This document shows positions 19,571-58,115 of a stretch of 64,000 bases of DNA, piece by piece. The stretch spans positions 18,724,001-18,788,000 of the forward strand of contig NC_082727.1 in NCBI RefSeq assembly GCF_030144855.1, in the 5' to 3' direction. This stretch comes from Hypanus sabinus (taxonomy: Eukaryota). Each line of letters opens with the position of its first letter. Positions within the stretch are counted from its first letter, which is position 1. A program made the position numbers and the translations under genes. The notes beneath the pieces are model-generated. The model was not told the DNA's origin and ran no database searches. It saw only the letters and a program-made list of their open reading frames with translations.

Positions 19571-20738
19571 AAGTTGGGCAAATCTATGTTTGTGCCATCA
19601 GGTGCTTCATTCTCCTTCTCTCCTAGTGGCCTAGAAGGAAGAACTTGTTCACTGCAGGGTCAATTCTGGCAGGGGTATTGGGATTTAAAGTCAAGGAAAA
19701 GCTTTTCGTAAGACATAGGTGCAGAGTTAGGCCATTCAGTTCACGGAGTCTGCTCCATTCCATTTAGTTATACCCCTGAATCCTGTTCTTCTGGCTTCCC
19801 TCTGCAACCTTTGACACTCTTACTAATCAATAGTCTATTAATCTCCACTTTAAATATACTGAGTGAGAGTTGTGGACTGCATTACCTGATTGTTGAATGG
19901 CAGAAGCCCTTCTCACATATTTACAAAGTATCTGAATGTCTTTGTTTCAGTGAATTAGTATCAAATCATGCAACAGTCTGGCAAGCTTTTTTTCCTTGTA
20001 GTGTTTTGGGGTCTTCACTGTAGAGCTGAAGAAGGGACGTTCACTACTCTGCAGTGATCTGCTCAGTTACTACAAAAGTATCAGATTTCTTCCTCTGGGG
20101 ATATGAGAATTTTGTTAATTCAAAGTCTTCCTTGCAACATTGATGGCCATGCCTTTGCTGTGTTATCACCTTGAACATTCATGAAGCTGAAGTATTCATT
20201 AGCTTAGGTTTTTGGTTCTGACTTTTGGCATGCATTTTCATTCCATGCATATGGATTGCCACACTATTCCTTGCTTGCACATGCATTCTGACTTGTGGTT
20301 AGTTGAAATGTTACCAGAAATCTCCCAGACAGGAGCAGTCAATTTTTTGACCACAACTTAATAGTAATGAGCCAGTTGCCAGCTTGCTCTGAGTTGAGTG
20401 CAGCTTCGATTTTGTTTTCCTTGGCTGCTTTGGCCTTATTTTACTACTATTAAGGATCTCTTAAGTGGCCTCTTCTCATAAACAATTTTTGGGTGCAGCT
20501 TGGTGGATCATTAGATGGGGCAAACTTGGTTGATTTGCAATTGTATGGTGCAGGCAGCAGCTAACAAGATCCTATTCCTGGCAATATTGTGGTTATTAAT
20601 ATCTGAAAGTATCAAATTCTGCAAAAGAATGAAGGTTGATTTTCCCTGATGAATATGCAGATGTAAAATTGATGTTACATTTTTCACCCACTAAAGCATG
20701 TATTCAGATATGAATAGTTCCAAATTTTCTATTTGCAG

Positions 20739-20913
20739 ATTGAGAAATGGCATATCAGAGCCACCAAGTTCGAAGAAATGTGCTGCAACGTAATGCAGAT
20801 GTTTACACGTCTTGCCAACTGTGAAAACAGATCCATTCTTTATGATCTGTACCCCTATGTCTGGGATATAAAGGGTGTTGTGTCTATGGTGAAATCCTTT
20901 GTCCAGTGGCTAG
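20739..20913 (+). CDS. OGA: OGA exon 10 ([15 protein letters not shown]...[18 protein letters not shown])
   Basis: ttgcag / gtaggt boundaries; 175 nt. Confidence 0.97.
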
Positions 20914-22738
20914 GTAGGTAACAGCACAGTTTGGTTTTCATCCCGTATGCTCATGGTTTGAGATCCTACAGTTGTGTCAGCCCTTGAAAACTTAAACAAA
21001 AGTTCATTACTATGGCGAATTATCTGGAGGTGGCAGTTCTTAAACTGTTCTTGCTTTTTAAATATGCCATTTGCTGCTTTTATCCAGTCAAGTTATGTTT
21101 TTAATTATCCCACTTTGATCTTGACTCTCTTCATTCACCTGTACAGTACAAGGCATTAGTAACTTGATGCCTTGTTTCTGAACTGGCATTTGAAACCAGG
21201 TTCAATTTGAATTTATATTTTCTAAACCACTTGTAAACAACTTTATTCTGGTGACTGTTTTTCAGAGGCTGATGTAATTGTTACATGTAACAATTTAAGT
21301 CTAGTGGTAGATTTCTTAAATGACAACCCATTGCATTTTATTTTTGTATTGTCTCTTTTCTGGGACTGACTGTGGACTACATTACATCACTAGAACTAGC
21401 TGAGTGTATCCAAAATTGGGGAATGCCACCCAAGAGAATAACAACACTCAAAGAACTACCCATGACAGAGCTGAAATATGCCGAGATCATGCACTGCTGT
21501 TGGGAGCTGCTTGCTGTGTGTTTTGTAACATTACTGTTTTCAACAGAACAGTGGCAGGCCAACAGATGCAGCAGTCCGAAAGCTTGGAGCGCAACTCCAG
21601 GCACGGCGCATGCGAGCTTTATAAAACGCGCAAGGCTATTCTGGTGTCTGCTGCTGCAGTCTGTACTTCAAAACTGCCACCAGTTCGAAAAATAAGAACA
21701 GGGTGGGGAGCTGCTTCAAAATGGGAGATTTGCAATCTCCTTTTTTCCTAAAGAATAATAATTCCAGTCATGGGACAAAGCAACTGTAATGGCTACTTTC
21801 ATTACAGGCATATTGAGATGAGGGAAGTGCAGACTGCCTCAGGCACCAGCATAGTCTGGGTTACAGCATGTAACCAGATTTTATTCACAGGTTCTACGCA
21901 GATGGCAGGGAATATGGCGTGGATGCAGTCTTTTAAAAACGATGCAGCAGGCAGCTCAACTGGCACCGTGATCACGGCTTGGATTCAGTTCATGGACTAG
22001 CTTTTGAAGCCCCCAGGGTTAAGAATCCTTTAGAAATGGGGTCCCCGGTTCAAGGGCAAAGCATTTGATGCGGTTTCTGAAAGATTGGCTGCCATTGTGT
22101 ACTGGGGAAGTGGGTGAGAAAGGTCCTATCTTAACGTAGTTAGCAATGCAATAACAAAGATCTGGATCAGGGGAGACAATTTAAAACATTTTAGGATATG
22201 AAATGGCAAATTTTTCTGGTAAATAGTACAAATGAATTTAACCATTTTGAAAAGAGTAGATAGGGTGCAAAAGAGTCCTTGTTGATCTTAGGTTTGTAGC
22301 AGTTAAGTTAAACAATTACAATGTGCAATAGAGAAACAGTACAAAAGGCCTTTTGGTCCAAATATCCATACTGTTCAAGGAGACCATCTGAGCTGACTCA
22401 AAGCCCTTCAAACTTTTTCTATTCATTCACCTGCCAAGATGTCTTTTAAGATGTTATCGTAACTGGCTCAACCTGTTCCTCTGGCATATAGTTTTGGCAA
22501 ATTAGTGATAGGTGAGACAAGCATAAGTGTTTTTGTCGAAGCATTCAGCATTAGACCATTGAATATTGGGAGCCCAAGTTGTGCAAGGCAGCCCATTGTT
22601 TAATTGTAGAATTCTGAGATGGTTCTAGTGTTTAGTGATGTAGTTTGCAGTCTGTCATAACCTGAGTGTGATGCTGTGATGTGAAGGGTTACTAACGACC
22701 TCTTCTATTGTCTTGTCTTCTTCCCTCACTGTGTACAG

Positions 22739-22792
22739 ATGGAAGAATCCTCAGCACAAGTTACTACAGCTGTGGGATCGACAACGCCAGAT
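22739..22792 (+). CDS. OGA: Putative alternative in-frame cassette exon of OGA (+18 aa: DGRILSTSYYSCGIDNARW)
   Basis: TACTAAC at 22690-22696, long pyrimidine tract, tacag acceptor and weak AT/gtacga donor. It is 54 nt, phase 1-1 and stop-free. It resembles DGRILSTS-type inserts recalled from vertebrate OGA isoforms (not verified here). Confidence 0.78.
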
Positions 22793-25700
22793 GTACGAAG
22801 CGTGGCGCGATCATTCGTTAGCTTAGTGATAGGCAATGAGGGTTTAAAAAAAATAATTTGAGGAAAGGTCTTGAAGTCACATTTGTGCAGCCAGTATTAT
22901 AAGACATGCTTTAACATTTTTTATAGAACAGTCTAGATTATCTTTAAAATCAAAGCTAGTTGTGCTACTGTCCCCAAGTACCCGTTACAAGCTCTTTGAA
23001 ATAAATTTGTTTTGCGGTCTGTAATAATGCATGATCAACGATTCCTGAAGCTGCAGTTAATTTTTAGAAATGGGTTCAGTTTTTAAGCTGGCTCACTTTG
23101 CATATGAAAGTCAGTTGCAGCGTAAAATTAATTGTACAAATTTTCCATTCCCCTTCCCTTTAAAAAAAAAAAAAAATTTTTTTAAAATTGAAGGTTAAGT
23201 AAAGTGTTTCCCTACCATATGGTATGTTTCAGTTTACTGAATATTGCATTATCCCTCCCGAATAGCATGTAACTTGGGTACTGCTCAGGACTGTATCTCA
23301 CTAGTGGATTGAGAGGAAGGCTTCCTTATTCCTAGCCAGGTTTTGAACTCGTTTTGAATTGATCCAATAAAACGAGTAAGACCCAGAAATTGAAGCTTTC
23401 CCTCTTGTGCTGCAGTGCTGAACCTGTCAGATGACTGTAATGGTATGGAGTGCATACTGGTGATCAGAAGTTCACACATTTGGAATGGTGAGATAGAGGA
23501 AAGCCAAAGTGAATTGAATTTTTCATATCGCTCACAGTTAAAAATCTTGCTGGGAAAATTGCCTTATTGAGGGCTTCAGTGTATTTGTCTCTTGCCTTGT
23601 TCCTGAAAATAATGTAGAGTTGGTTTCTCTGTGCAAGAATCAACGCAGGCTTCAATTTCTTCAGTTAGGAAAGCCGATAAGAGAAAACCGATATTCTATA
23701 GGTCTACACAGAACCTAAACATTTAACTGCTTTTATTTTTTACTGCTGACTCTATAGTTCTGATTTTCAGATGGCTCTATTTGGCACTTCGATCAGCCTA
23801 TTCAATCAGAATCATTTAGTCATCTGCTGAAAGAGTGCTCCATATAGACCTGTTCCTCCCAAGCTACCTGTCCTATCAGTAATGTCAGTAGCAATAAGAA
23901 ATGTTATTTGCCCAAGTAAGCTTGGAGTCTTTGTCATCAAAGCATGGGTTTGGTTAAAGACATTCCTTAAAGCTTATTTACGGAGGGGTGAAGTCTTTGA
24001 TGTTTGTCAGAAACCTGAGTTGCCTATAGTGTCTACAGTGGAGATGCAGCCTGCTGCCACTGATGAGAGTTGCCCAGTGTTGAAGGATATTGGAGGCAGA
24101 AATATATAAAATCTGGACGCAACAATTAGTTCTAGACACTGCTATTGGTAAACAAAGACTTCCCATTTTCTCTTAAAGTGTCTTCTTCCCTAACTTTCTA
24201 AATTGTTTTTGGTGAGCGTGTCTTTTCCTCACCTCTTATTAAATGTTAAATGCTCAGTGTCTGCCTAGAATTTAGAATGGAGAGAGTATTTACTAAGCCC
24301 ACCAGAATTTTCTAGGTTCTGCATTCTATCATGACGTCAGCTCAGACCGCATTGACCTGTGCCTGTTTATTGATGTGTGTGGAACAAAGCCACTTTGTCT
24401 GACTCAATTACTGACTTGGCTGATATGTCTGACATAGTTAACTATCCAGATTCCAAAGTGCTTTTTGTCTGGCTTCCTCTTTTGCTCTCTGATTGAAGCT
24501 TTGTATGTAGTCACCCAGCACTGCAGTGGTTATCAGCCATTCTGTGAAGGTGCTTGACCGGAAGCTAAAGAAATAATCTATTTGAACTGCAGTGGAAACT
24601 GAGCTGCAACCAATTCATATCAGATAATATTCTTCAGTGTTGCTTTAGTTCTGCTCCTTTGTTCACTTTCACTTTTTCCAATCCCATTGCTATCAGTGAG
24701 CATCACTGTGGTCAGACTTTAATGCAGGACTGTAGAGGATATTTATGCAGTTAGATTCAACTACTTAGTTGCAAGTAGTTCTGGATCTTTAGGTTCTTAA
24801 GGGATCTGTCACGTGTATATGCTGTGCTAGATTCTGCAGGCTATCCAGTTCGGTGTTCCCCTCCCTGTTCCCTTTTGTTGAGGAAGTACAGTGTTCACAG
24901 TGGTGAAACAGTCACAGTGACTGCACTTGTTCGCCTTGCACTGTAAAGTGGCCCATGATTGTAAAAGGCACTGTATGAATGTGAACCTTGTTCATGCTTC
25001 TGATCAAGGTGAGCAGGGTTGAAGCCTAGTCCTTCAACTGGTACACAGATTCTGACTGAATTTCTACTACAGATCCAGACCACAAAATGGAAAACGCTAA
25101 GAACTTTAGAGTGCCTATCTTGGATACCTGATGTTTATTTAAGCCATCAGCTATCTGCTTGGATGAACCTGGAACCGAAGAGACCTGCCCTGGTTGACAA
25201 CAGTCTGGAGCTTGCTTTGAATGATTACCTCCTTAGAAAACTTTTGGTCAAACATGCTGAAGAACATGGAAGGAACAAGTTAAGCAGGTGGGAGTGACCC
25301 AGACTTCATGTGCAGGACCTGATTTTTCCAATCCTTGGAAGAACAAGAGTGAGCTTGTGAAGCCATCTCAATTTGTCTACAGAATGCTGCCTTACTCTGA
25401 CAATTACGACTGTTTTTCCATGTGGAGGCTTTTATCGTTGGATTTTGTGCGAGAACTGAGAGATGCCATAGGTCATTATGGTTAAGCTTTCAATGATTCT
25501 GCTGATCAGTTGGTTCACAGTGATGCTCGGCCTATTGAAAGACACAATACTGCAGATGTTGGAATTCTGGAAGAACAATCTTGAAAATACTCAAGATTCC
25601 TGGCAGCCTTTCTGGGAATGAAGTGTTGCCTCTTTTTTCTCTCCACTGGAGTACTTCCAGCACTTACACATTTGAATTAAGGTTTACCCTATATTTGGTC

Positions 25701-26187
25701 TATAACCAGCATAGGTCGTTTTTTCTGTTTAAACAAACAAATTCTAGTACCAAATGTCATCTGACAAGAGGAGCACCAAAATGTGACTTCATTTAAGGTA
25801 TTGCTTAGGGCTGCAATGGGACTTGTGGAATACCAATATTTGAGTGTTATTCAAGCTTCCCAAAGACAATGGAAAAACTTGGGATTATTCCATGCACATT
25901 TTTAAATAAAGCATTTGTAAAGAGCCACAGTAGAAATTTCTCAAGTTGTGGGTGGCACTTGTTTGGTTAATAGATGGTTGTTTCATTTTACTACTTTACA
26001 AAAACAAGTGGGCAAAAAGAATGAATCATTACAGCCCTAAATCTTGTAAGAGGTAGTCTAGGTCAGACAGGGCATTTCTTGCTGCGCGCTTTTTCTTTCT
26101 GTTGAGAAGGTGGTGTATTGCTTTTGCGGAAAAGTAAGACCACAGGAAGCCCCCACGTAACATTCTCCGCTTGGATCTGATCAACAG

Positions 26188-26273
26188 GGTGTCGTAGTCA
26201 ATCTTCAGCACAGTTCTTGAGTGGCGACCAAGAACCCTGGGCCTTTAGAGGTGGTCTAGCAGGAGAGTTTCAG
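26188..26273 (+). CDS. OGA: OGA exon 11 ([29 protein letters not shown])
   Basis: tcaacag / gtattc boundaries; EPWAFRGGL motif; both splice sites are weak. Confidence 0.97.
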
Positions 26274-27220
26274 GTATTCAACGAATTCCCACTGACTGAT
26301 TTTGTTTTTTCTTCATTTTGAAAGAGAAACACTGTATAAAAAGCAAGGATTGGTCTGTTGATGGCTAGCTGGTTTTCTGAGTAGAATTTGGTACATTTGG
26401 TACTGGCACTAATTTGCTTTCTTTTCAGTTAGAAGGAGATGTTGGAATCCCACTGCGCATGCGTGCACTGCAAATTTTAGTTCACATGTGGTTGACAGAA
26501 ACGTTCCTTTGCAGGTTGCGCAACAGTTACTCAGCACTGGCGCAGCGTGCTCAGATCTTGAAGTTCCATGAACAAGGGTGACCAAGTAATGATGAACATT
26601 CAGCCTCTTAAAGTGTAGGTGGGGTGGAGGGTGGGAAATAAATGACCAGGCTTTGACTTCAATAGAAGTACAGTTTAACTCCCCTTGCCATTGGTGCTCA
26701 ATGGACTCGTAGGTGAGTTGATGGATAAAGATATTCCTGACTGTTGCTGAATCTTGGTTTTCCCTAAAGGTTCATGGAGCTTCACCGCGCTGTTTTTCTT
26801 TTCTCCCCTACAGGTGCTTTTACGCGCAGCCTGCGAAACCGCGCTTGCGAAGAAGCTCTGGATGCACGGCTTCGACAGCCAGTTAACCCTCTCCAGACCA
26901 AACCTCCCCCCCAAAAAATTCCTTGCTCCCACCCTTCAAAAGAAATATTTGACTTTTTTAAAAAAAGCTTGTAATCCACAAATTCCATCGTAAGTGCAGT
27001 GATTTCCACATCTTCACTTATTTGCTGCAGTAGATACTAGTTGGTATTTAGCATGTAAGACATACAGTTGATGTCATCTGGTTATTACACAGATGGTTGT
27101 CTTACAAGGTGTCTTCAGTAGCAAATGAGTTTGAGATTGGAAGGTATGTTATGTGGAGCAGATACTAATGTCCAAATTCTGATGTAGAACTATACTGACT
27201 AAGCTGTTTATTCTTCGCAG

Positions 27221-27325
27221 CGTTTATTGCCCATTGATGGGGCAAATGATCTCTTCTACCAGCCTCCACCCCCCATGCCAACCTCAAAAGTCTATGCAAT
27301 TAGACCGTACTTTCCAAAAGATGAG
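27221..27325 (+). CDS. OGA: OGA exon 12 ([35 protein letters not shown])
   Basis: tcgcag / gtgagt boundaries. Confidence 0.97.
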
Positions 27326-27574
27326 GTGAGTGGTGTTTCATAATAATTTAATTAAAATCAGTTTTAGAACTAGAGGCATGGTAAGTAAGTTGTTGATAAG
27401 ATCACTTGGAGTTTTGTGTACAGTTTTGGAAAGACATTATCAAGCAGGAGAGGATGCAGAAAAGATTTCAGAGGATGAAGTGTCTCGACCATTTCTCTCC
27501 ATACATTCTACCTGACTCTGTATATCTGTATTTTTCTGGATATCCATCATCTGCAGAATCTCCTGTGCTTCAGA

Positions 27575-28020: not shown

Positions 28021-29541
28021 AAACCAAAAGGTGTTATCTGTACAGAATGTAACATGGGAATGAGATGGTGGATACTGAGTACAGTTATGATAGGCTTGCC
28101 CTTTTCACCAGTGAATCAAAGTTTATAATTCAATGTAGGTAACTCCTATTTATTATATCCATTGGATTATGTCCATTATAATGCTGAAATTACAGAATGA
28201 ATTGAGCATAATTAGATTAAATGTAAGCAAGCCAAACTGCTGGATGATCATGACTAACGTCAAAATCCTAGCTTTTGTTTTCATGTAAAGTAAGATGTAA
28301 CTGAACTTTAGTTGAGTTACTTTGCTCTGTGAAGCCAGCCATGCAGGAACTGCACAGTCGAGCCACGTTCCCCTGGCATGAGACTCTGGAGATTTGTTGC
28401 AGCATGTTATTGCTGTCTGTACACAGAAGCCCCTTATATAGAATCTTATCTATATTTCCATCAGTTATTCAGTTGCTCTTGAAGCAATTCTTCATTGTGG
28501 CTCGTCATCAGCTCTTCCACATTTCCCTTCATTATTAATGATTTTAATCCCTCTTCTTATGCTTTAATGTGAAGAAAGTATCTTAAATGTCTGCACCTTT
28601 TGGCAATTTTGACCAATAATAGTATTCACAATTTATAATCCCTTCATACGTTAGAAATGACATTATTAAAGGTCCTATTGACTATCTCTTCAGCAGACAT
28701 TGTTGTGTTTGGAGTTCTCAAAGCCTACTTGCACTAAATCAGGTCAGATTGGCCTGTTCTTAGCATTCCTACACTGCAAGGAGAATTGTAACCTGGGTTC
28801 TATTAAATCTTCAAAACAGAATGCAATGCAAGTTAATGGGGTAAGACTGGAAGTGGAATAATATTTGGATTTCTCCAAAAGTTTGCAGTATGTTAGCGTA
28901 ACAGTTGGTGTAATTATTATTATTACAGACCAGTGACCCAGGTTTAATTTTGCCATTGTTTGTAAGGATTTTGTATGTTCTCCTCAAGACCAGGTGCTCT
29001 GGTATCCTCCCACATGGTTAATGGGTTAATTGGTCACAAGGGTATTGTTGGGCCAGAAGGGCCTGTTATCCCTAAATAAAGTAGACTATATGGATTAATG
29101 GTTTTGCAATGTCTTTGTCGGAATCCAATCTGGCAAGATCTTGGTCCAAAAGCCGGGGCCATTATTGGGCAAGTTTCTGTGATTATTGCTTTAATTTAGT
29201 CAAGGCTGTTTGGGTTGGGCGTCTTTTATGTTCAAAATATCCAGCAACCTAATTAAACATTGCATCTACTCTCGTATTCTGCAATATCAGAAACAAGTGC
29301 ACCACTGTTGGTGTTCTTCACTCCCATTTTGGGAAGAAGCAAAGTTGAACATTTCATTTCATTGGGACTTTGGACTCCGTACTGTTGAACCCCACTGGAT
29401 CATCTGACTGCTTCCATATCTCCAGTGTTCCTAAAATAGTGATTGCAGGTAAAAGAATCTGGGGAAACTGGAATTCTCTATGGCCACTATGTCCTCTGAC
29501 AGTGAGTTTACTTGGTGAGTTTGATATTAGATTGTCTAGTC

Positions 29542-31127
29542 CAGGGGTCAGCAACCTTTACCACTGAAAGAGCCACTTGGACCCGTTTCCCACAGAAAAG
29601 AAAACACTGGGAGCCGCAAAACCCGTTTGACATTTAAAATGAAATAACACTGCATACAACGTTTTTTTTGCCTTTATGCTATGTATAAACAAACTATAAT
29701 GTGTTGCATTTATGAAATTGATGAACTCCTGCAGAGAAAACGAAATTACATTTCTGCATGCAACAAAAACATTTTGAACTCCGAAAAAAAGACGTTGGGT
29801 TGAAAGTTACTTTTAAGTAAAATATTCAATGTCTATTTGAGTCCTTCTTGTATTTATGAAAAACGCCGAACTTAAATTTTCCGCCAGCAGCAAACCAAAA
29901 ATAACGTCAGCCAGCTGTCATCCTGAAAAATGAAAGGACTATTTCACTGAACAATGAAAAAATATGAATATAAGTAAAATAATAGGCAATTAAAATATTT
30001 ATCATACTTGGTTAATGGGATTTCTGCTCCTGGACCTCAGCGCACAGCGTCTGCACATCAGGGCTGTATGATGTCACCTTCATCTTTACACAGGATCGCA
30101 AGCTGTCATCTGTGAGGTTTTCAATATCACTCCATTTGTGTTTCTGAGCAAGAACGGCCTTCTGACGGGCAACATCTTCAAGGTCTGCTGTCAAGCGTCT
30201 AAACTTGGACACCCATATGTCTTTGTCGGCTATGTCGGCCAGTTCCATCTCAAGATCAGGTTGACTCACACCTGCCAATGCAGTCGTATTCAGTAGGGAA
30301 GGATCGATGCTTAAGGGAGTGACCGGGAAGGATAATGTGTTTTTTTCCTCTCTGAACTCACAGAAGCGTTTCCCAAACGATGTTTGCATTGCGATGATTG
30401 CAGAATGTAAATACTCCGAAATTATCATGTCGTGACCTTGTTTGAACTCTCTCAAATTGGGGAAGTGAGACAATGTGCCTTTCTGTAAATCTCTGGCAAG
30501 CACTGTCAACTTGCGCTCGAATGCCAAAACATCCTCCAACATGTGCAGGGCTGTACGTCCTTTCCCCTGAAGAGCTGTGTTCAGCGTGTTCAGGTGCGCT
30601 GTCATGTCTACCATGAAGTGTAGCTTTTCCAGCCACTCTGGCTGTTCCAGCTCAGGAAAGGTGAGCCCTTTGCTGCCCAGGAAAGTTTTCACTTCTTCCA
30701 GACACGCGACAAAGCGTTTCAGCACCTTCCGTCTGGACAGCCAGCGATAAAAACACGTTGTAGCGGTGTCAGTAAACTGCAGTCAAAGATAGCTTTATTC
30801 GAACTAAACAGCCTTGCTTTTAAGCCTCCCTCAACCCAGCCCCCATGGACGCAGATGCTGCAAAAGACGCGTACTCACAAACCCCCGTAGGCTATCTCCC
30901 TTAGCCGGAATGCTGGCTAATTGTGAGCCGTTTCGGATGTGGCAGGAAATGTGTCGCTACACTTAGGTTGTACAAGATCACCATAATTACATTTCAAAAG
31001 CTAACAAACTAACATAAAATACATTTTAATTAAATACTGACCAATTATTACCCAAAGCCACAGGGAGCCGCAGCACAGAGGTGAAAGAGCCACAAATGGC
31101 TCGGGAGCCGCAGGTTGCCGACCCCCG
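29542..31127 (-). mobile_element. Non-autonomous hAT (Charlie/SPIN-like) transposon with a 237-aa transposase remnant
   Basis: TIRs CAGGGGTCAGCAACCT and rc CGGGGGTCGGCAACCT; perfect 8-bp TSD GTCTAGTC (29534-29541, 31128-31135); ORF 30012..30725 preceded in frame by the RWLS motif. Confidence 0.95.
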
Positions 31128-33399
31128 GTCTAGTCAGTCACCTCTTGAACTTAGTTGATGTAACTTTTGAGCCAAGGTGATGGTCTCTATTGTAGTGACC
31201 CTGATACCTATGAAGGTGTACACATCTAAACTCCATTGTAGTATTCAGGTAATAAATATTTGGATACTTGGAGGAAAAGAAATCAAGTTCATTTTCATTC
31301 AACCATACACGTGTATACCACCAAACAAAGCAACATTACTTCAGACCATGGTGTACGACAGAGCATATAACTCGAACCGATTACACAAAGTAATAAGTAC
31401 ACGTGATCAAATAATAAGGTGCATATATAAAGCAAGTTTAAAAAGTACAGTATAACATTACTGATGCTTCATATGTGATAAGATGTGGGTATATTTAGAG
31501 CCAGATAGGTTCTTGATTGGTAAGGGGGTTAAGGGTTATGGGGAGAAGGTGGGAGAATGGGATGGGGAAAAAAAAACCCAGAAGCAATGGCAGAGCAGAA
31601 TGTATGTGCTGAATAGCTTGACTCTTGCTCCTATATCATAAGTGCTTAATGGTCTTATGGATATCGAGATTATTCCAAATCTGGAGTGGGAAAGTAATAT
31701 CTGGAGAGCTTGAGCAGTGTCTGTGGTGGGAGAAAATGACAACATTTCTTGTCTGCCCTGATGCAGGTTTCAACCTGAAACAATTCCTTCCCCTTTATTT
31801 GCCAAACCAATGGACTTGAGATCCTATAGCTCTTTTGAGAGATTTCTGGACAGATCTGAGTTTCATCATTGCCATCTGAAACCTGTGTTACCTTGTAATC
31901 AGCTTTGTTAATGGATCTGGTTCCTGAATTGAGAGCAAAGAACTATTTGGAGGTTCTGAATTTAGTTAAAATTCTGCATGCAATTATTTAAAGCTCTGTT
32001 ACATCCAATCATGCTTTGAACAAAACCTTGTCTCTTGTATTTGGAATTACATGGGTGTTGCCTCAGACTTCATCAAAGCTATTGTTTATCACCAGCCTTC
32101 TCAGTCTTGTGAAGACACTGGGTCTGAGTGTGTATCAATTACACTCAAGTTTCAGAGTTTCTTTTTACTGTAAAGATCTTGATTTGTAATTTAGAGGAAG
32201 AATGATTTATTTCGTCAAAACTAAATGCTTTGTATCTACTCAGTCCAGATTCTTGTGCTGCAAGACAATGGTTAAGACTATACTAGTCTTGCCCACTTCT
32301 CAGCAATCTCTTCAGTTTGTTGTAAAGTTCTGATCTAGTCCTTTGGTCTGGCTCATTCATTGTTAAGCTCTTTGGTACCTTGGCAGATCTTGGCTGGTTT
32401 CTCGCTATGACTGATTTGGATGTTCAACAGTTTGACCATGTGCTCGACCGCCACAGTTCTCTCCAACAAATGGATTGAGAAGTCCCACTACCATTAGCCA
32501 TGGGAACTGAAAAGACCCTGTGGACCTTGTTGCTCTGTATTTGTCATTTCCTGGGAAGTGTGTAGTTGAAGAGTGGCAGACATCCGAAATGGGAACTACT
32601 ACCTGTGTATCACTGAAATAACTGTGCCATAAAAGTGTACATGGAACGGCGGCAGAGCCTTGATGATTGATTCCAAGTGGCACTGAAGATCTCTGCTTAT
32701 GCCTGCAAATGATAACCGTGCTCGCTGCTCCTCTTGGAGCTTTATTTCATTCCAAATTCGCCTCCTATAACTTGGCAGTTTGTGAACTTCATGTCTCGTT
32801 TTAATGATGTCTCCTGGATTCTCCTAATGGAACCACCATTCCTCAGTTGATTTCTGATTCACCAGGTGCTATTTAAGATGCCATAAAATGTTAATGAGCT
32901 TGTGCTGCCTTTAGAAGTTAAATAATTTTCCCCAAACTGAAGGCTGCCCTTTCTCCGTTGTTCTTGTGCTATCATAAACTATTAGTGATTTTCTGATCTG
33001 TAGGTCAGTTACGTCTGCACATCTTTAGTGAAGCAAAAATCTTGGTGCTTTACTGGAGTGCTATAAAATTTGACACAGCCACAGATGACAAAACTTTTGA
33101 CAGGTATGTTTTATGAAGTGTTTAAAGGATAGAGATATGAAATTGGTGGGGGGGGGGGGGGTGGTGTCACTTAAGAGTGTTGCTGGCAGCTGAAAACGTA
33201 ACTGCCTGTCCTAGAGCAGTTTGGTCTAAAGGAGTTCCAGGTTGAGCGCTGTAGCAAGATGGGAATTGAAGCATTCCACAGTAATTTAGGAAAGAGAATT
33301 TTAAATACACTGGGAGCCAGTGCATGTTGCTAAGCATGGGTGATAAAGTATGATTTAAGATTCCAGTTGCCTCATTGCGAGAGTGGAAAGCTAACCCCA

Positions 33400-48844: not shown

Positions 48845-48944
48845 CTTGCAAAAGAAAAGGTAGCGGTCAATAAACCTTGCAACAGGCAGAGTTATCGGAA
48901 ATGTTAAATTTCTGTACAGTCTAAACACAAAGCACACTGTCCAG

Positions 48945-49755
48945 ACACTGTCCCATCACACACTCCTGGAGATCAGGTACAGAGTGAAGCTCCCTCTGCG
49001 CTGTCCCATCACACACTTCTGGCGTCAGACACAGAGTGAAGCTTCCTCCACACTGTCTCATCACATATTCCTCGAGATCAGGTACAGAGTGAAGCTCTTG
49101 ACACTGTCCCATCACACATTCCTGGAGATCAGGTACAGAGTGAAGCTCTTGACACTGTCTCATCACACACTCCTGGGGTCAGAGACAGATTGAAGCTCCC
49201 TCTGCGCTGTCCCATCACACACTTCTGGCGTCAGACACAGAGTGAAGCTTCCTCCACACTGTCCCATCACACATTCCTGGAGATCAGGTACAGAGTGAAG
49301 CTCTTGACACTGCCCCATCACACACTCCTGGGGTCAGAGACAGAGTGAAGCTCCCTCTGCGCTGTCCCATCACACACTTCTGGCGTCAGACACAGAGTGA
49401 AGCTTCCTCCACACTGTCTCATCACACATTCCTCGAGATCAGGTACAGAGTGAAGCTCTTGTCACTGTCCCATCACACACTCCTGGGGTCAGAGACAGCG
49501 TGAAGCTCCCTCTGCGCTGTCCCATCACACACTTCTGGGGTCAGACACAGAGTGAAGCTCCCTCCACACTGTCTCATCACACATCACTGACATCAGACAC
49601 AGAGTGAAACTCCTGCCACACCGTCCCATCACACCCGGGGTCAGATACAGAGTGAAGCTCCCTCCGTATTGTACCATCACACACTCCTGGGATTGGATAC
49701 AGAGTGAAGCTCCCTCCACACCGCCCCATTACACACCCCTGGGGTCAGGCACTGA
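48945..49755. repeat. Minisatellite of 51-53-bp units with a 155-bp trimeric higher-order repeat
   Basis: Unit consensus about ACACTGTCCCATCACACACTCCTGGGGTCAGACACAGAGTGAAGCTCCCTCT. A-type units start at 48998, 49204, 49359 and 49514. Confidence 0.95.
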
Positions 49756-50921: not shown

Positions 50922-52468
50922 GGCTTGATGGTCTGCATCCCAGGGTAATTAACGAGGTGGCTCTAGAAATCGTGGACGCACTGGTAATCATTTTCCAATG
51001 TTCTATAGATTCAGTATCAGTCCCTGAGGATTGGAGGACAGCTAAGGTTATCCCACTTTTTAAAGAAAGGGGGGAGAGAAAACGGAATTATAGACCAGCT
51101 AGCCTGATATCAGTGGTGGGGAAGATGCTGGAGTCAATTATAAAAGATGAAATAACTGCACATTTGGATAGCAGTAACAGGATTGATCCGAGTCAGCATG
51201 GATTTACGAAAGGGAAATCATGCTTGATTAATCTTCTGGAATCTTTTGAGGATGTAACTATGAAAATGGACAAGGGACAGCCAGTGGATGTAGTGTACCT
51301 GGACGTTCAGAAAACCTTTGATAAGGTCCCACATAGGAGATTAGTGGGCAAAATTAGAGCACATGGTATTGGGGGTAGGGTACTGACATGGATAGAAAAT
51401 TGGTTGGCAGACAGGAAACAAAGAGTAGGGATTAACAGGTCCTTTTCAGAATGGCAGGCAGTGACTAGTGGGGTACCGCAAGGCTCGGTGCTGGGACTGC
51501 AGCTATTTACAATAAACATCAATGATTTAGATGAAGGGATTAAAAGTAACATTAGCAAATTTGCAGATGACACAAAGCTGGGTGGCAGTGTGAAATATGA
51601 GCAGGATGTTAGGAGAATGCAGGGTGACTTGGACAGGTTGGGTGAGTGGGCAGATGCAGTTTAATGTGGGTAAATGTGAGATTATCCACTTGGTGGCAAG
51701 AACAGGAAGGCAGATTACTACCAGAGTGGTGTCAAGTTAGGAAAAGGGGAAGTACAATGAGATCTAGGTGTTTTTGTTCATCAATCACTGAAAGTAAGCA
51801 TGCAGGTACAGCAGGCAGTGAAGAAAGCTAATGGCATGTTGGCCTTCGTAACAAGGGGACTTGAGTATAGGAGCAAAGAGGTCCTTCTGCAGTTGTACAA
51901 GGCCCTGGTGAGACCACACCTGGAGTATTGTATGCAGTTTTGGTCTCCAAATTTGAGGAAGGACATTCTTGCTAATGAGGGAGTGTAGCGTAGATTCACG
52001 AGGTTAATTCCCGGGATGGTGGGACTGTCATATGTTGAAAGACGGGAGTGCCTGGGCTTCTATACACTGGAATTTAGAAGGATGAGAGGGGATCTGATTG
52101 AAACATTAACATTATTAAGGGACCGGACACGCCAGAGGCAGGAAACATGTTTCCGATGTTGGGGGAGTCCAGAACCAGAGGCCACAGCTTAATAATAAAG
52201 GGTAGGCCATTTAGAACGGAGTTGAGGAAAAACTTTTTCACCAGAGAGTTGTGGATCTATGGAATGCTCTGCCTCAGAAGGCAGTGGGGGCCAATTCTCT
52301 GGATGCTTTCAAGAAAGAGTTGGATAGAGCTCTTAAAGATAGCGTAGTCAAGGGATATGGGAAGAAGGCAGGAACGGGGTACTGATTGTGGATGATCAGC
52401 CATGATGACAGTGAATGGCGGTGCTGGCTCGAAGGGCTGAATGGCCTACTCCTGCACCAATTGTCTAT
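50922..52468 (+). mobile_element. Younger 5'-truncated CR1 with RT ORF (235 aa, then frameshifted) and 7-bp TSD
   Basis: ORF 50957..51664 contains QHGFTKGKSC, GVPQGSVLG and KFADDTKL; TSD AAAACAG at 50915-50921 and 52469-52475. Confidence 0.93.
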
Positions 52469-55593: not shown

Positions 55594-58115
55594 GGGGAAG
55601 ATGCTGGAGTCAATTATAAAAGAGGAAATTACGACACATTTGGACAGCAGTAGAAGGATCAGTCCCGGTCAGCATGGATTTAGACAATAGACAATAGGTG
55701 CAGAAGTAGACCTTTCGGCCCTTCAAGCCTGCACCGCCATTCTGAGATCATGGCTGATCAATTACTATCAATACCCTGTTCCTGCCTTGTCCCCATAATC
55801 CCTTGATTCCCCTATCCATAAGATACCTATCTAGCTTCTTCTTGAAAGCATCCAGAGAATTGGCCTCCACTGCCTTCCTAGGCAGTGCATTCCGGACCCC
55901 CACAACTCTCTGGGAGAAGAAGTTTTTCCTTAACTCTGTCCTAAATGACTTGCCCCTTATTCTCAAACCATGCCCTCTGGTACTGGACTCTCCCAGCATC
56001 TGGAACATATTTCCTGCCTCTATCTTGTCCAATCCCTTAATAATCTTATATCAGATCCCCTCTCAATCTCCTTAATTCCAGCATGTACAAGCCCAGTCCC
56101 TCTAACCTTTCTGCGTAGGACAGTCCAGACATCCCAGGAATTAACCTCGTGAATCTACGCTGCACTTCCTCTACAGCCAGGATGTCTTTCCTTAACCCTG
56201 GAGACCAAAACTGTACACAATACTCCAGGTGTGGTCTCACCAGGGCTCTGTATAAATGCAAGAGGATTTCCTTGCTCTTGTACTCAATTCCCTTTGTAAT
56301 AAAGACCAACATTCCATTAGCCTTCTTCACTGCCTGCTGCACTTGCTCATTCACCTTCAGTGACTGATGAACAAGGACTCCGAGATCTCTTTGTATTTCT
56401 CCCTTACCCAACTCTACACCGCTCAGATAATAATCTGCTTTCCTGTTCTTACACCCAAAATGGATAACCTCACACTTATTCACATTAAATGTCATCTGCC
56501 AAGTATCTGCCCACTCACCCAGCCTATCCAAGTCACCCTGAATTCTCCTAACATCCTCATCACATGCCACACTGCCACACAGCTTAGTATCATCAGCAAA
56601 TTTGCTGATGTTATTTTTTATGCCTTCATCCAAATCGTTAACGTAAATGGTAAACAGCTGTGGTCCCAATACCGAGCCCTGTGGCACCCCACTAGTCACC
56701 ACCTGCCATTCCGAGAAACACCCATTCACCGCTACCCTTTGCTTTCTATCTGCCAACCAGTTTTCTATCAATGTCAATGCCTCCCCCCCCCCCGATGCCC
56801 TGAGCTTTGATTTTACCCACCAATCTTCTATGTGGGACCTTATCAAATTTATGAAGGGAAAATCATGCTTGACTAATCTTCTGGAGTTTTTTGAGGATGT
56901 AACTATGAAAATGGACAAGAGAGAGCCAGTGGATGTAGTGTACCTGGACTTCCAGAAAGCTTTTGATAAAGTCCCACATAGGAGATTAGTGGGCAAAATT
57001 AGGGCACATGGTATTGGGGGCAGAGTACTGACATGGATTGAAAATTGGCTGGCTGACAGGAAACAAAGAGTAGTGATTAACGGGTCCCTTTCGGAATGGC
57101 AGGCTGTGACCAGTAGGGTACTGCAATGTTCGGTGCTGGGACCACAGCTGTTTACAATATACATTAATGAGTTAAATGAAGGGATTAAAGTAACATTAGC
57201 AAATTTGCTGATGACACAAAGCTGGGTGGCAGTGTGAAAAGTCAGAAGGATGTTATGAGAATGCAGGGTGACTTGGACAGGTTGGGTGAGTGGGCAAATG
57301 TATGGCAGATGCAGTTTAATGTGGATAAATATGAGATTATCCACTTGGTGGCAAGAACAGGAAGGCAGATCACTACCAGAGTGGTGTCAAGTTAGGAAAA
57401 GGGGAAGTACAATGAGATCTAAGTTCTTGTACATCAGTCAATGAAAGCAAGCATGCAGGTACAGCAGGCAGTGAAGAAAGCTAATGGCATGCTGGCCTTT
57501 ATAACAAGGGGAATTGAGTATTGGAGTAAAGAGGTCCTTCTGCAGCCATACAGGGCCCTGGTGAGACCCCACCTGGAGAATTGTGTGCAGTTTTGGTCTC
57601 CAAACTTGAGTAAGGACATTCCTGCTATTGAGGGAGTGCAACATAGGTTCACAAGGTTAATTCCCGGAATGGCGGGACTACGTTGAAAGATTGGAGCGAC
57701 GGGGCTTGTATACACTGGAATTTAGAAGGATGAGAGGGGATTGATTGAAACATAAGATTATTAAGGGACTGGACACGCTGGAGGCAGGAAGCATGTTCCC
57801 ACTGATGGGTGAGTCCAGAACTAGAAACCATAGTTTGAGAATAAGGGGTAGGCCATTTAGAACAGAGATGCGGAAAAACTTTTTCACCCAGAGAGTGGTG
57901 GATATGTGGAATGCTCTGCCCCAGAAGGCAGAGGAGGCCAAGTCTCTGGATGCATTCAAGAGAGAGTTGGATAGAGCTCTTATAGATAGCGGGGTCAAGG
58001 GATATGGGGAGAGGGCAGGAACAGGGTACTGATTGTGTATGACCAGCCATGATCACAGTGAATGGTGGTGCTGGCTAGAAGGGCTGAATGGCCTACTCCT
58101 GCACCTACTGTCTAT
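55594..58115 (+). mobile_element. CR1 RT/3' copy (55594-55682 plus 56847-58115) interrupted by an opposite-strand CR1
   Basis: GKMLESIIKEEI..QHGF continues as MKGKSCLTNLLEFF after the insert; CR1 tail near 58100. Confidence 0.9.
55683..56846 (-). mobile_element. CR1 RT/3' copy inserted antisense into the previous copy
   Basis: (CAATAGA)n tail at 55683; GVPQGSVLGP and KFADDTKL on -; ATTTA duplicated at 55678-55682 and 56847-56851. Confidence 0.9.

Follow-up and report, generated by a model that had tools for sequence, protein, structure and literature searches.

Introns 10 and 11 of the stingray OGA gene as a probable orthologue of the mammalian autoregulatory splicing module

Does the OGA gene of a cartilaginous fish carry the splicing switch described in mammals and, if so, which intronic sequences make it up? 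The question is raised by a window of 64,000 nt from the Atlantic stingray Hypanus sabinus (NC_082727.1, positions 18,724,001 to 18,788,000), in which a sequence-only reading had proposed that positions 20914-27220 form a fish equivalent, or even a more elaborate version, of the mammalian module. Homeostasis of O-linked N-acetylglucosamine (O-GlcNAc) requires that the splicing of OGT and that of OGA be controlled reciprocally, and the cis-elements of the OGA introns, as well as the sensor, are still undefined in mammals (Tan 2020). In mammalian OGA, two detained introns, DI-1 and DI-2, flank exon 11, whose skipping splices exon 10 to exon 12 in a shifted frame and creates a substrate of nonsense-mediated decay (NMD), and inhibitors of OGT and OGA shift the detained and skipped species in opposite directions (Tan 2020, NAR, PMC7261177). 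Detention and the response to O-GlcNAc have been established in human and mouse cells only, and the module has already been described as conserved in vertebrates (PMC7261177); Mgea5 had been listed in 2012 as an NMD target of the class with a premature termination codon (PTC), 'PTC upon exclusion' (PMC3446288). We find that 20914-27220 is very probably the stingray orthologue of this autoregulatory module, in which two slowly spliced ('detained') introns flank the 86-nt exon 11.

A tblastn search with vertebrate O-GlcNAcase proteins placed OGA on the + strand of the window, to which the exons and intronic elements of introns 10-11 described below belong as well; the window is without any N. 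Exon bounds were set by a junction-by-junction search. The spliced exons 2-16 are 100% identical to H. sabinus XP_059803173, and all exon junctions translate exactly to H. sabinus OGA, including that of exon 10 (20739-20913, 175 nt), which ends in ...VQWL-G in phase 1. The region under study is exactly intron 10 (20914-26187), exon 11 (26188-26273, 86 nt) and intron 11 (26274-27220, 947 nt, as compared with 952 nt in bat), followed by exon 12 (27221-27325, 105 nt). The coordinates of the sequence-only reading (20914-27220) were right, as exon 10 ends at 20913 and exon 12 starts at 27221. Introns 10 and 11 are the orthologues of DI-1 and DI-2, respectively, and all matches within intron 10 are collinear. 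Five further OGA loci were compared, those of the electric ray Narcine, the sevengill shark Heptranchias, the turtle Dermochelys, the bat Pteropus and the bowfin Amia; 'six species' refers below to these and the stingray, and 'three cartilaginous fishes' to the stingray, Narcine and Heptranchias. The mammal in all alignments is the bat, the human sequence not being among the compared loci.

Introns 10 and 11 stand apart from the rest of the gene. When the alignable fraction of each stingray intron was computed from collinear blastn chains against Narcine and Heptranchias, intron 10 reached 0.64 and 0.43 and intron 11 reached 1.00 and 0.98, respectively, whereas the remaining 12 OGA introns, adjacent introns 9 and 12 included, were alignable over 0.00-0.18. 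In the comparisons of stingray with turtle, bat and bowfin, all non-exonic matches in the whole gene were confined to introns 10-11, and the same two introns stand out likewise between bat and turtle. In bins of 100 nt, the identity among the three cartilaginous fishes was 0.80-1.00 in several intronic blocks, as against 0.79-0.86 in coding exon 10, and two blocks (23239-23438, with a three-way identity of about 0.80, and 25739-25838, with 0.82) are conserved in cartilaginous fishes only. A run of 162 identical nucleotides (26118-26279), shared by stingray, electric ray and sevengill shark, covers the acceptor region of exon 11, the exon itself and its donor; within it, 38 nt across the acceptor (26163-26200) are identical in six species, as are 205 of the 947 positions of intron 11. 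A multi-species comparison of the kind suggested as a check on the sequence-only reading thus revealed intronic conservation far above the gene's own background, and not an absence of conservation above neutral. Judging from these alignments, introns 10-11 and the synonymous sites of exon 11 are under purifying selection across jawed vertebrates, unlike any other OGA intron.

The splice sites of exon 11, which had been called weak, are qualitatively so: the acceptor has a pyrimidine fraction of 0.56, among the lowest in OGA, and the donor, CAG/GTATTC, is without +4A, +5G and +6T. Hardly any position differs, across the species from stingray to bat, in these two sites and in the stretch of about 35 nt upstream. 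The exon is 86 nt long in bat too, and 75 of its 86 positions are identical in six species. Among cartilaginous fishes its third codon positions are 100% identical; the figure is 86-89% against bat and turtle and 68% against Amia, while the other exons show 33-58% (60-84% within cartilaginous fishes), with the exception of exon 3 (68%) and exon 12 (65%) in the comparison with Amia. The constraint on exon 11 is thus one that acts at the RNA level. When exon 10 is joined directly to exon 12, the resulting frameshift (...VQWL-AFIAH-stop) brings in a premature stop five codons into exon 12, which is followed by four more junctions, exons 13-16 lying downstream.

The stingray thus resembles the system of Tan 2020 in the gene, in the two introns, in the 86-nt exon 11 with a premature stop upon skipping and in the unusual intronic conservation; individual elements, the splice-site regions of exon 11 and several DI-2 blocks among them, agree base for base with those of bat and turtle. 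It differs from that system in having, as other fishes do, an annotated coding exon (exon 10a) inside DI-1, and extra strong pseudo-splice sites conserved among cartilaginous fishes only. The proposal of a fish equivalent is upheld, at the sequence level, by the same exon length, the same frameshift and premature stop, the same two outstanding introns and the conserved acceptor of a 59-nt cryptic exon that is described below. The suggestion of a 'more elaborate' module, by comparison, traces solely to the candidate pseudo-splice sites specific to cartilaginous fishes. Because the module is common to stingray, shark, bowfin, turtle and bat element by element, it dates to the jawed-vertebrate common ancestor, and an ancestral gnathostome OGA switch is the best explanation that we can offer for the alignments. 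As to how the module works in the stingray, we infer from the mammalian data that its introns are detained, that the skipped form undergoes NMD and that the choice depends on O-GlcNAc.

The cryptic exon of intron 11 gives a further point of comparison. In human OGA, cryptic sites within DI2 define a 'sub-DI2' of 227 bp as well as a poison exon of 59 bp that is mutually exclusive (Nat Commun 2026, PMC12894984). The bat intron has the corresponding acceptor at +167 and donor at +226, 59 nt apart, and by alignment the stingray acceptor at 26428/26429 is the orthologue of the mammalian cryptic-exon acceptor, with the GAAGGAGATG start of the exon kept. However, the mammalian donor TAG/GT is TAG/TT in the stingray, and the next conserved donor-like site, at 26514/26515, would yield a unit of 86 nt in rays and of 88 nt in the shark. 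This site, TTTGCAG/GT, closes a conserved block that extends from 26420 to 26515. The idea that the 86-nt unit (26429-26514) might be a frame-preserving substitute for exon 11 was rejected, as the unit, though stop-free in the two rays, is 88 nt long in the shark.

Within intron 10, the 54-nt segment at 22739-22792 that had been put forward as an in-frame cassette exon proved to be one, and it has annotated counterparts in relatives. This exon 10a replaces G with D-GRILSTSYYSCGIDNAR-W and has the donor GAT/GTACGA. Its upstream flank (22675-22738) carries TTACTAAC, which resembles a branch point, then a pyrimidine tract and, as an invariant acceptor, TGTACAG; on its 3′ side an element at 22872-22896, TGAAGTCACATTTG.GCAGC, is conserved in each of the three bony vertebrates and in each cartilaginous fish compared. 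For all sharks, rays and coelacanth examined, NCBI isoform X1 equals X2 plus exactly 18 residues between exons 10 and 11. A protein search restricted to this region found the insert annotated in gar, zebrafish, many teleosts, sharks and rays, the coelacanth X1 query carrying it too, and found no annotated tetrapod isoform with it. The sequence is nevertheless kept in turtle and bat at 81-88% identity, with frame and AG/GT intact and with the donor GTT (+3 T) in place of GTA, and exon 10a is in frame and stop-free in six species. Its third-codon identity, 88-100%, is at least equal to the conservation of the whole exon, which points to selection at the RNA level. Exon 10a is a real alternative exon, which we take to be coding in fishes; with a GTT donor and no annotated isoform, it may survive in tetrapods as a decoy.

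Several other short elements are found again, in collinear order, in two or more of the bony vertebrates. In intron 10 these are, besides the 22872-22896 element, three segments that we call E1, E2 and E3. E1 (21506-21545) has the core GCTGCTTGCTGTGT, invariant in six species. E2 (21606-21650) is CpG-rich, reads GCGCATGCGAGC ... GGCTATTCTGGTG and is present in turtle, bat and Amia; over 21606-21649 the three cartilaginous fishes show no difference at all. E3 (21841-21960), with a three-way identity of 0.90, is conserved to Amia and turtle and contains a small hairpin, a pyrimidine tract and a cryptic YAG/GT at 21890/21891, followed by CAGCAGGCAGC. In intron 11 the recurring elements are 26345-26373, the block from 26428/26429 to the TTTGCAG/GT at 26514/26515, TCCATGA (26565), GTTCATGGA (26770), TACAG/GT at 26813/26814, the invariant GCCAGTTAACCCTCTCCAGACCAAACCT (26878-26905) and, upstream of exon 12, CAGTAGCAAATG (27106-27117). 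Conserved YAG/GT sites thus occur at 21890/21891, 26514/26515 and 26813/26814, each with a further AG within 8-16 nt. The last of them is the acceptor, conserved in six species, of a putative exon-like unit B (26814-26989, 176 nt) that includes GCCAGTTAACCCTCTCCAGACCAAACCT and whose donor, GTAAGT (26990), is found in cartilaginous fishes only. The sequence-only reading had listed exon-like units with premature stops in these introns; such units are indeed present as splice-site-like motifs, which are candidate sites.

Two of the three cryptic YAG/GT sites lie next to candidate long-range RNA stems. In an inverted-repeat scan, 26559-26573 (core TCCATGA) proved complementary to 26770-26784 (core GTTCATGGA), which lies 29 nt upstream of the cryptic acceptor at 26813, both arms being in invariant blocks. 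RNAalifold applied to six species recovers this DI-2 stem, of 15-16 bp, inside a larger nested fold with a consensus energy of -46.9 kcal/mol, as compared with -15.7 ± 3.9 for column shuffles (z = -8.1; none of 100 shuffles reaches it) and with a weaker -34.3 kcal/mol for the antisense strand. The arm-to-arm duplexes have energies of -14 to -25 kcal/mol in six species, none of 500 shuffles being as good, and 94% of the cells are paired vs 28-60% with slid partners. A similar candidate stem is predicted in DI-1 between the 3′ half of E2 (about 21634-21650), as its 5′ arm, and the 5′ end of E3 (about 21841-21860), as its 3′ arm. Across six species the duplex energy ranges from -25 to -29 kcal/mol; the loop measures 178-197 nt in five of them and 442 nt in Amia, and the column-shuffle z-score of the block is -3.8. 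The 3′ arm of either stem begins 30-45 nt before a YAG/GT common to the jawed vertebrates sampled, and both stems contain G-U pairs and would therefore be specific to the sense strand. Column shuffles gave no structure signal around exon 10a (z = -1.2), in the upstream flank of exon 11 (-0.2) or in exon 11 with its flanks (-1.05). No Rfam family matched 20700-27400 at E <= 1, and the conserved blocks are therefore not a known snoRNA, miRNA or other RNA.

Following the mammalian work, the stingray module would operate as follows. At low O-GlcNAc, exon 11 would be skipped and the mRNA destroyed by NMD, whereas at high O-GlcNAc intron 11 would be removed first from the detained transcripts, which would commit them to exon 11 inclusion and raise OGA. 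The cryptic AG/GT at 21890/21891, 26514/26515 and 26813/26814 may act as decoy sites that stall productive pairing, and the two stems (about 21634-21650 with about 21841-21860, and 26559-26573 with 26770-26784), just upstream of two of these decoys, could control access to the branch-point and pyrimidine-tract regions. From this we derive a tentative model, on the doubtful side in our own estimate, in which the cis-code of the switch would consist of two ancient structured units: stems of about 15 bp that close a variable loop of about 110-200 nt (442 nt in Amia DI-1), one per detained intron and 30-45 nt upstream of a cryptic AG/GT, would gate the decoy acceptors and set the balance between detention and exon-11 skipping, exon 10a being coding in fishes and a pure decoy in tetrapods.

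Several observations weigh against this model, and some of them against a splicing role of individual elements. Compensatory pairs amount to only 2 of 15 in the DI-2 stem, a number reached by 439 of 1000 shuffles, and folding 26425-26885 as a single sequence gives nothing out of the ordinary (z = -1.06). The stems are derived from six sequences of about four lineages with almost invariant arms, so that the support they receive is suggestive. The strong pseudo-splice sites GTAAGT (26990) and GTAAGA (about 26135) are conserved only within cartilaginous fishes. Finally, E2 carries the palindrome GCGCATGCG and a TATAAA-like motif, which could equally be a DNA-level element. The idea that the GCGCATGCG motif of intron 10 might pair with that of intron 11 was also considered and rejected, as the intron-11 copy is conserved nowhere outside the stingray.

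The multi-copy fraction, which we used as a proxy for the content of transposable elements (TE) and which is a lower bound owing to the small comparison set, is 0.00 in introns 10 and 11, in agreement with the TE poverty noted from the sequence alone. The companion claim that introns 4, 8, 12 and 14 are largely TE-derived was not established by the same lower-bound measure (0.39, 0.24, 0.04 and 0.20, respectively; intron 9 has 0.21). The segment 22335-22490, which had been taken for a small CR1 scrap, is the least conserved bin of the region, and no further copy of it was found in the window or in the five comparison loci. The CpG-retaining patches that had been reported were recovered as raised observed/expected ratios (0.44-0.59) at 21501-22000, 22501-23000 and 26001-27000, the ratio being mostly 0.05-0.3 elsewhere, and 35 of the 82 intronic CpGs, clustered within conserved blocks, are kept in all three cartilaginous fishes.

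These CpG-retaining patches are what one would expect if the conserved blocks were regulatory in cis at the level of DNA, for instance as an enhancer within the gene or an alternative promoter of OGA or of a neighbour, and were not RNA splicing elements. The GCGCATGCG palindrome of E2, which we take to resemble an NRF1 site and which is followed by TTTATAAAA in cartilaginous fishes, would fit the same explanation. However, conservation peaks at exon 11, at exon 10a and at their splice sites, synonymous positions included, and the conserved motifs are splice-site-like and sense-oriented. The predicted stems, moreover, use G-U pairs and fold better in sense than in antisense, and the mammalian orthologues are experimentally detained introns. 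We therefore regard a DNA-level origin of the conservation as very unlikely for the region as a whole, although it could be true for E2 alone.

One could also ask whether the conservation reflects coding alternative exons or 3′ ends, namely exon 10a and a read-through or terminal exon like that of the short OGA isoform (OGA-S), and not a regulatory switch. Exon 10a keeps its frame without a stop in six species, many fishes have it annotated as coding, and the mammalian short OGA includes part of intron 10. But of the roughly 4 kb of conserved intron, exon 10a accounts for 54 nt, and its third positions are more conserved than its first and second ones, which is not a protein-level signature. 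Reading through from exon 10 into the stingray intron 10 meets a stop after 2 codons, and the 26429-26514 unit, 86 nt in length here and 88 nt in shark, does not conserve the frame. An origin in coding sequence is, for these reasons, highly improbable. The explanation that we find barely credible is that no special constraint exists at all and that the alignments reflect a slow clock, a local mutation cold spot or an alignment artefact. Cartilaginous fishes evolve slowly, and some of the weak matches have E-values near 1. Yet introns 9, 12 and all others are only 0-18% alignable in the same species pairs, and since OGA's own other introns serve as an internal control, a slow clock is excluded; introns 10-11 also stand out in bat vs turtle, and their elements recur collinearly in three independent bony-vertebrate lineages. 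The autoregulatory splicing module is thus the reading that we retain.

The layout of this module has a parallel in intron 4 of OGT, with its decoy or poison exon and intronic splicing silencer (Park 2017, PMC5588854; Parra 2018, PMC6097662). In both cases a cassette or cryptic exon and conserved, partly tandem sites lie in a retained intron of an O-GlcNAc cycling gene, and the proposed logic, a non-productive engagement of decoy sites, is the same, decoy activity in OGA being hypothetical. Parra 2018 characterizes decoy-exon-mediated intron retention by a cryptic exon or cryptic sites within the retained intron, often several in competition, and by decoy sites that bind U2AF and on which retention depends. 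The first of these traits is found here as well: cryptic sites and competing AGs lie inside introns 10-11, and exon 10a is kept in tetrapods with no annotated isoform. The OGT system nevertheless concerns a different gene and has the opposite polarity, as inclusion is non-productive in OGT, and the likeness that we claim is one of layout. The splicing-factor genes in which ultraconserved elements accompany alternative splicing coupled to NMD (Ni 2007; Lareau 2007) are likewise reported to combine an NMD-coupled alternative exon with extreme non-coding conservation, comparable to the 162-nt run reported here. In contrast to their products, OGA is an enzyme and not an RNA-binding protein acting on its own pre-mRNA.

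The module itself having already been published, what is new here are the two candidate long-range stems, which are conserved in six jawed vertebrates and each of which lies a short way before a conserved cryptic AG/GT. The comparison also narrows about 6 kb of intronic sequence to a set of about a dozen invariant, short elements open to mutagenesis. The frozen weak sites of exon 11, exon 10a, the three cryptic AG/GT sites and the two candidate stems form a shortlist with which the mechanism can be tested in human or zebrafish cells.

Elsewhere in OGA, a non-exonic block upstream of exon 2 (1098-1623) shows 77% identity over 534 nt with Narcine and 69% with Heptranchias, and is the sole strong non-coding conservation of the gene beyond introns 10-11; it may represent an OGA element of a 5′ intron or one close to the promoter. 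In intron 12, several collinear blocks between 28532 and 29502 are conserved with Narcine only (63-82%). The Heptranchias isoform X4 (802 aa) has a novel C-terminus directly after exon 12, which suggests that in cartilaginous fishes intron 12 harbours an alternative terminal exon. The same intron holds a CpG-rich patch at 29501-31500 (observed/expected 0.55-0.76), which has no alignment to Narcine or shark and is probably a young insertion. Inside it, an open reading frame (ORF) of 237 aa on the - strand (30012-30725) gave no Pfam match; presumably it resembles the C-terminal part of hAT-type transposase-derived proteins.

Farther along the window, ORF fragments of RVT_1 reverse transcriptase, of the long interspersed nuclear element (LINE) type, are found at 50957-51664 (+) and 56046-57344 (-), and related copies also sit in OGA introns of Narcine and Heptranchias. 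On the - strand, 48486-48851 matches the Pfam DNA_pol_B_thumb and palm domains and is the final coding exon of a gene of the DNA polymerase lambda/beta type, which lies tail-to-tail with OGA. Downstream of this gene (POLL), the segment 48944-49835 has up to 12 overlapping self-matches in a self-BLAST, together with an ORF (48921-49166) that has a repeated peptide motif, and is probably a tandem or minisatellite-like repeat.

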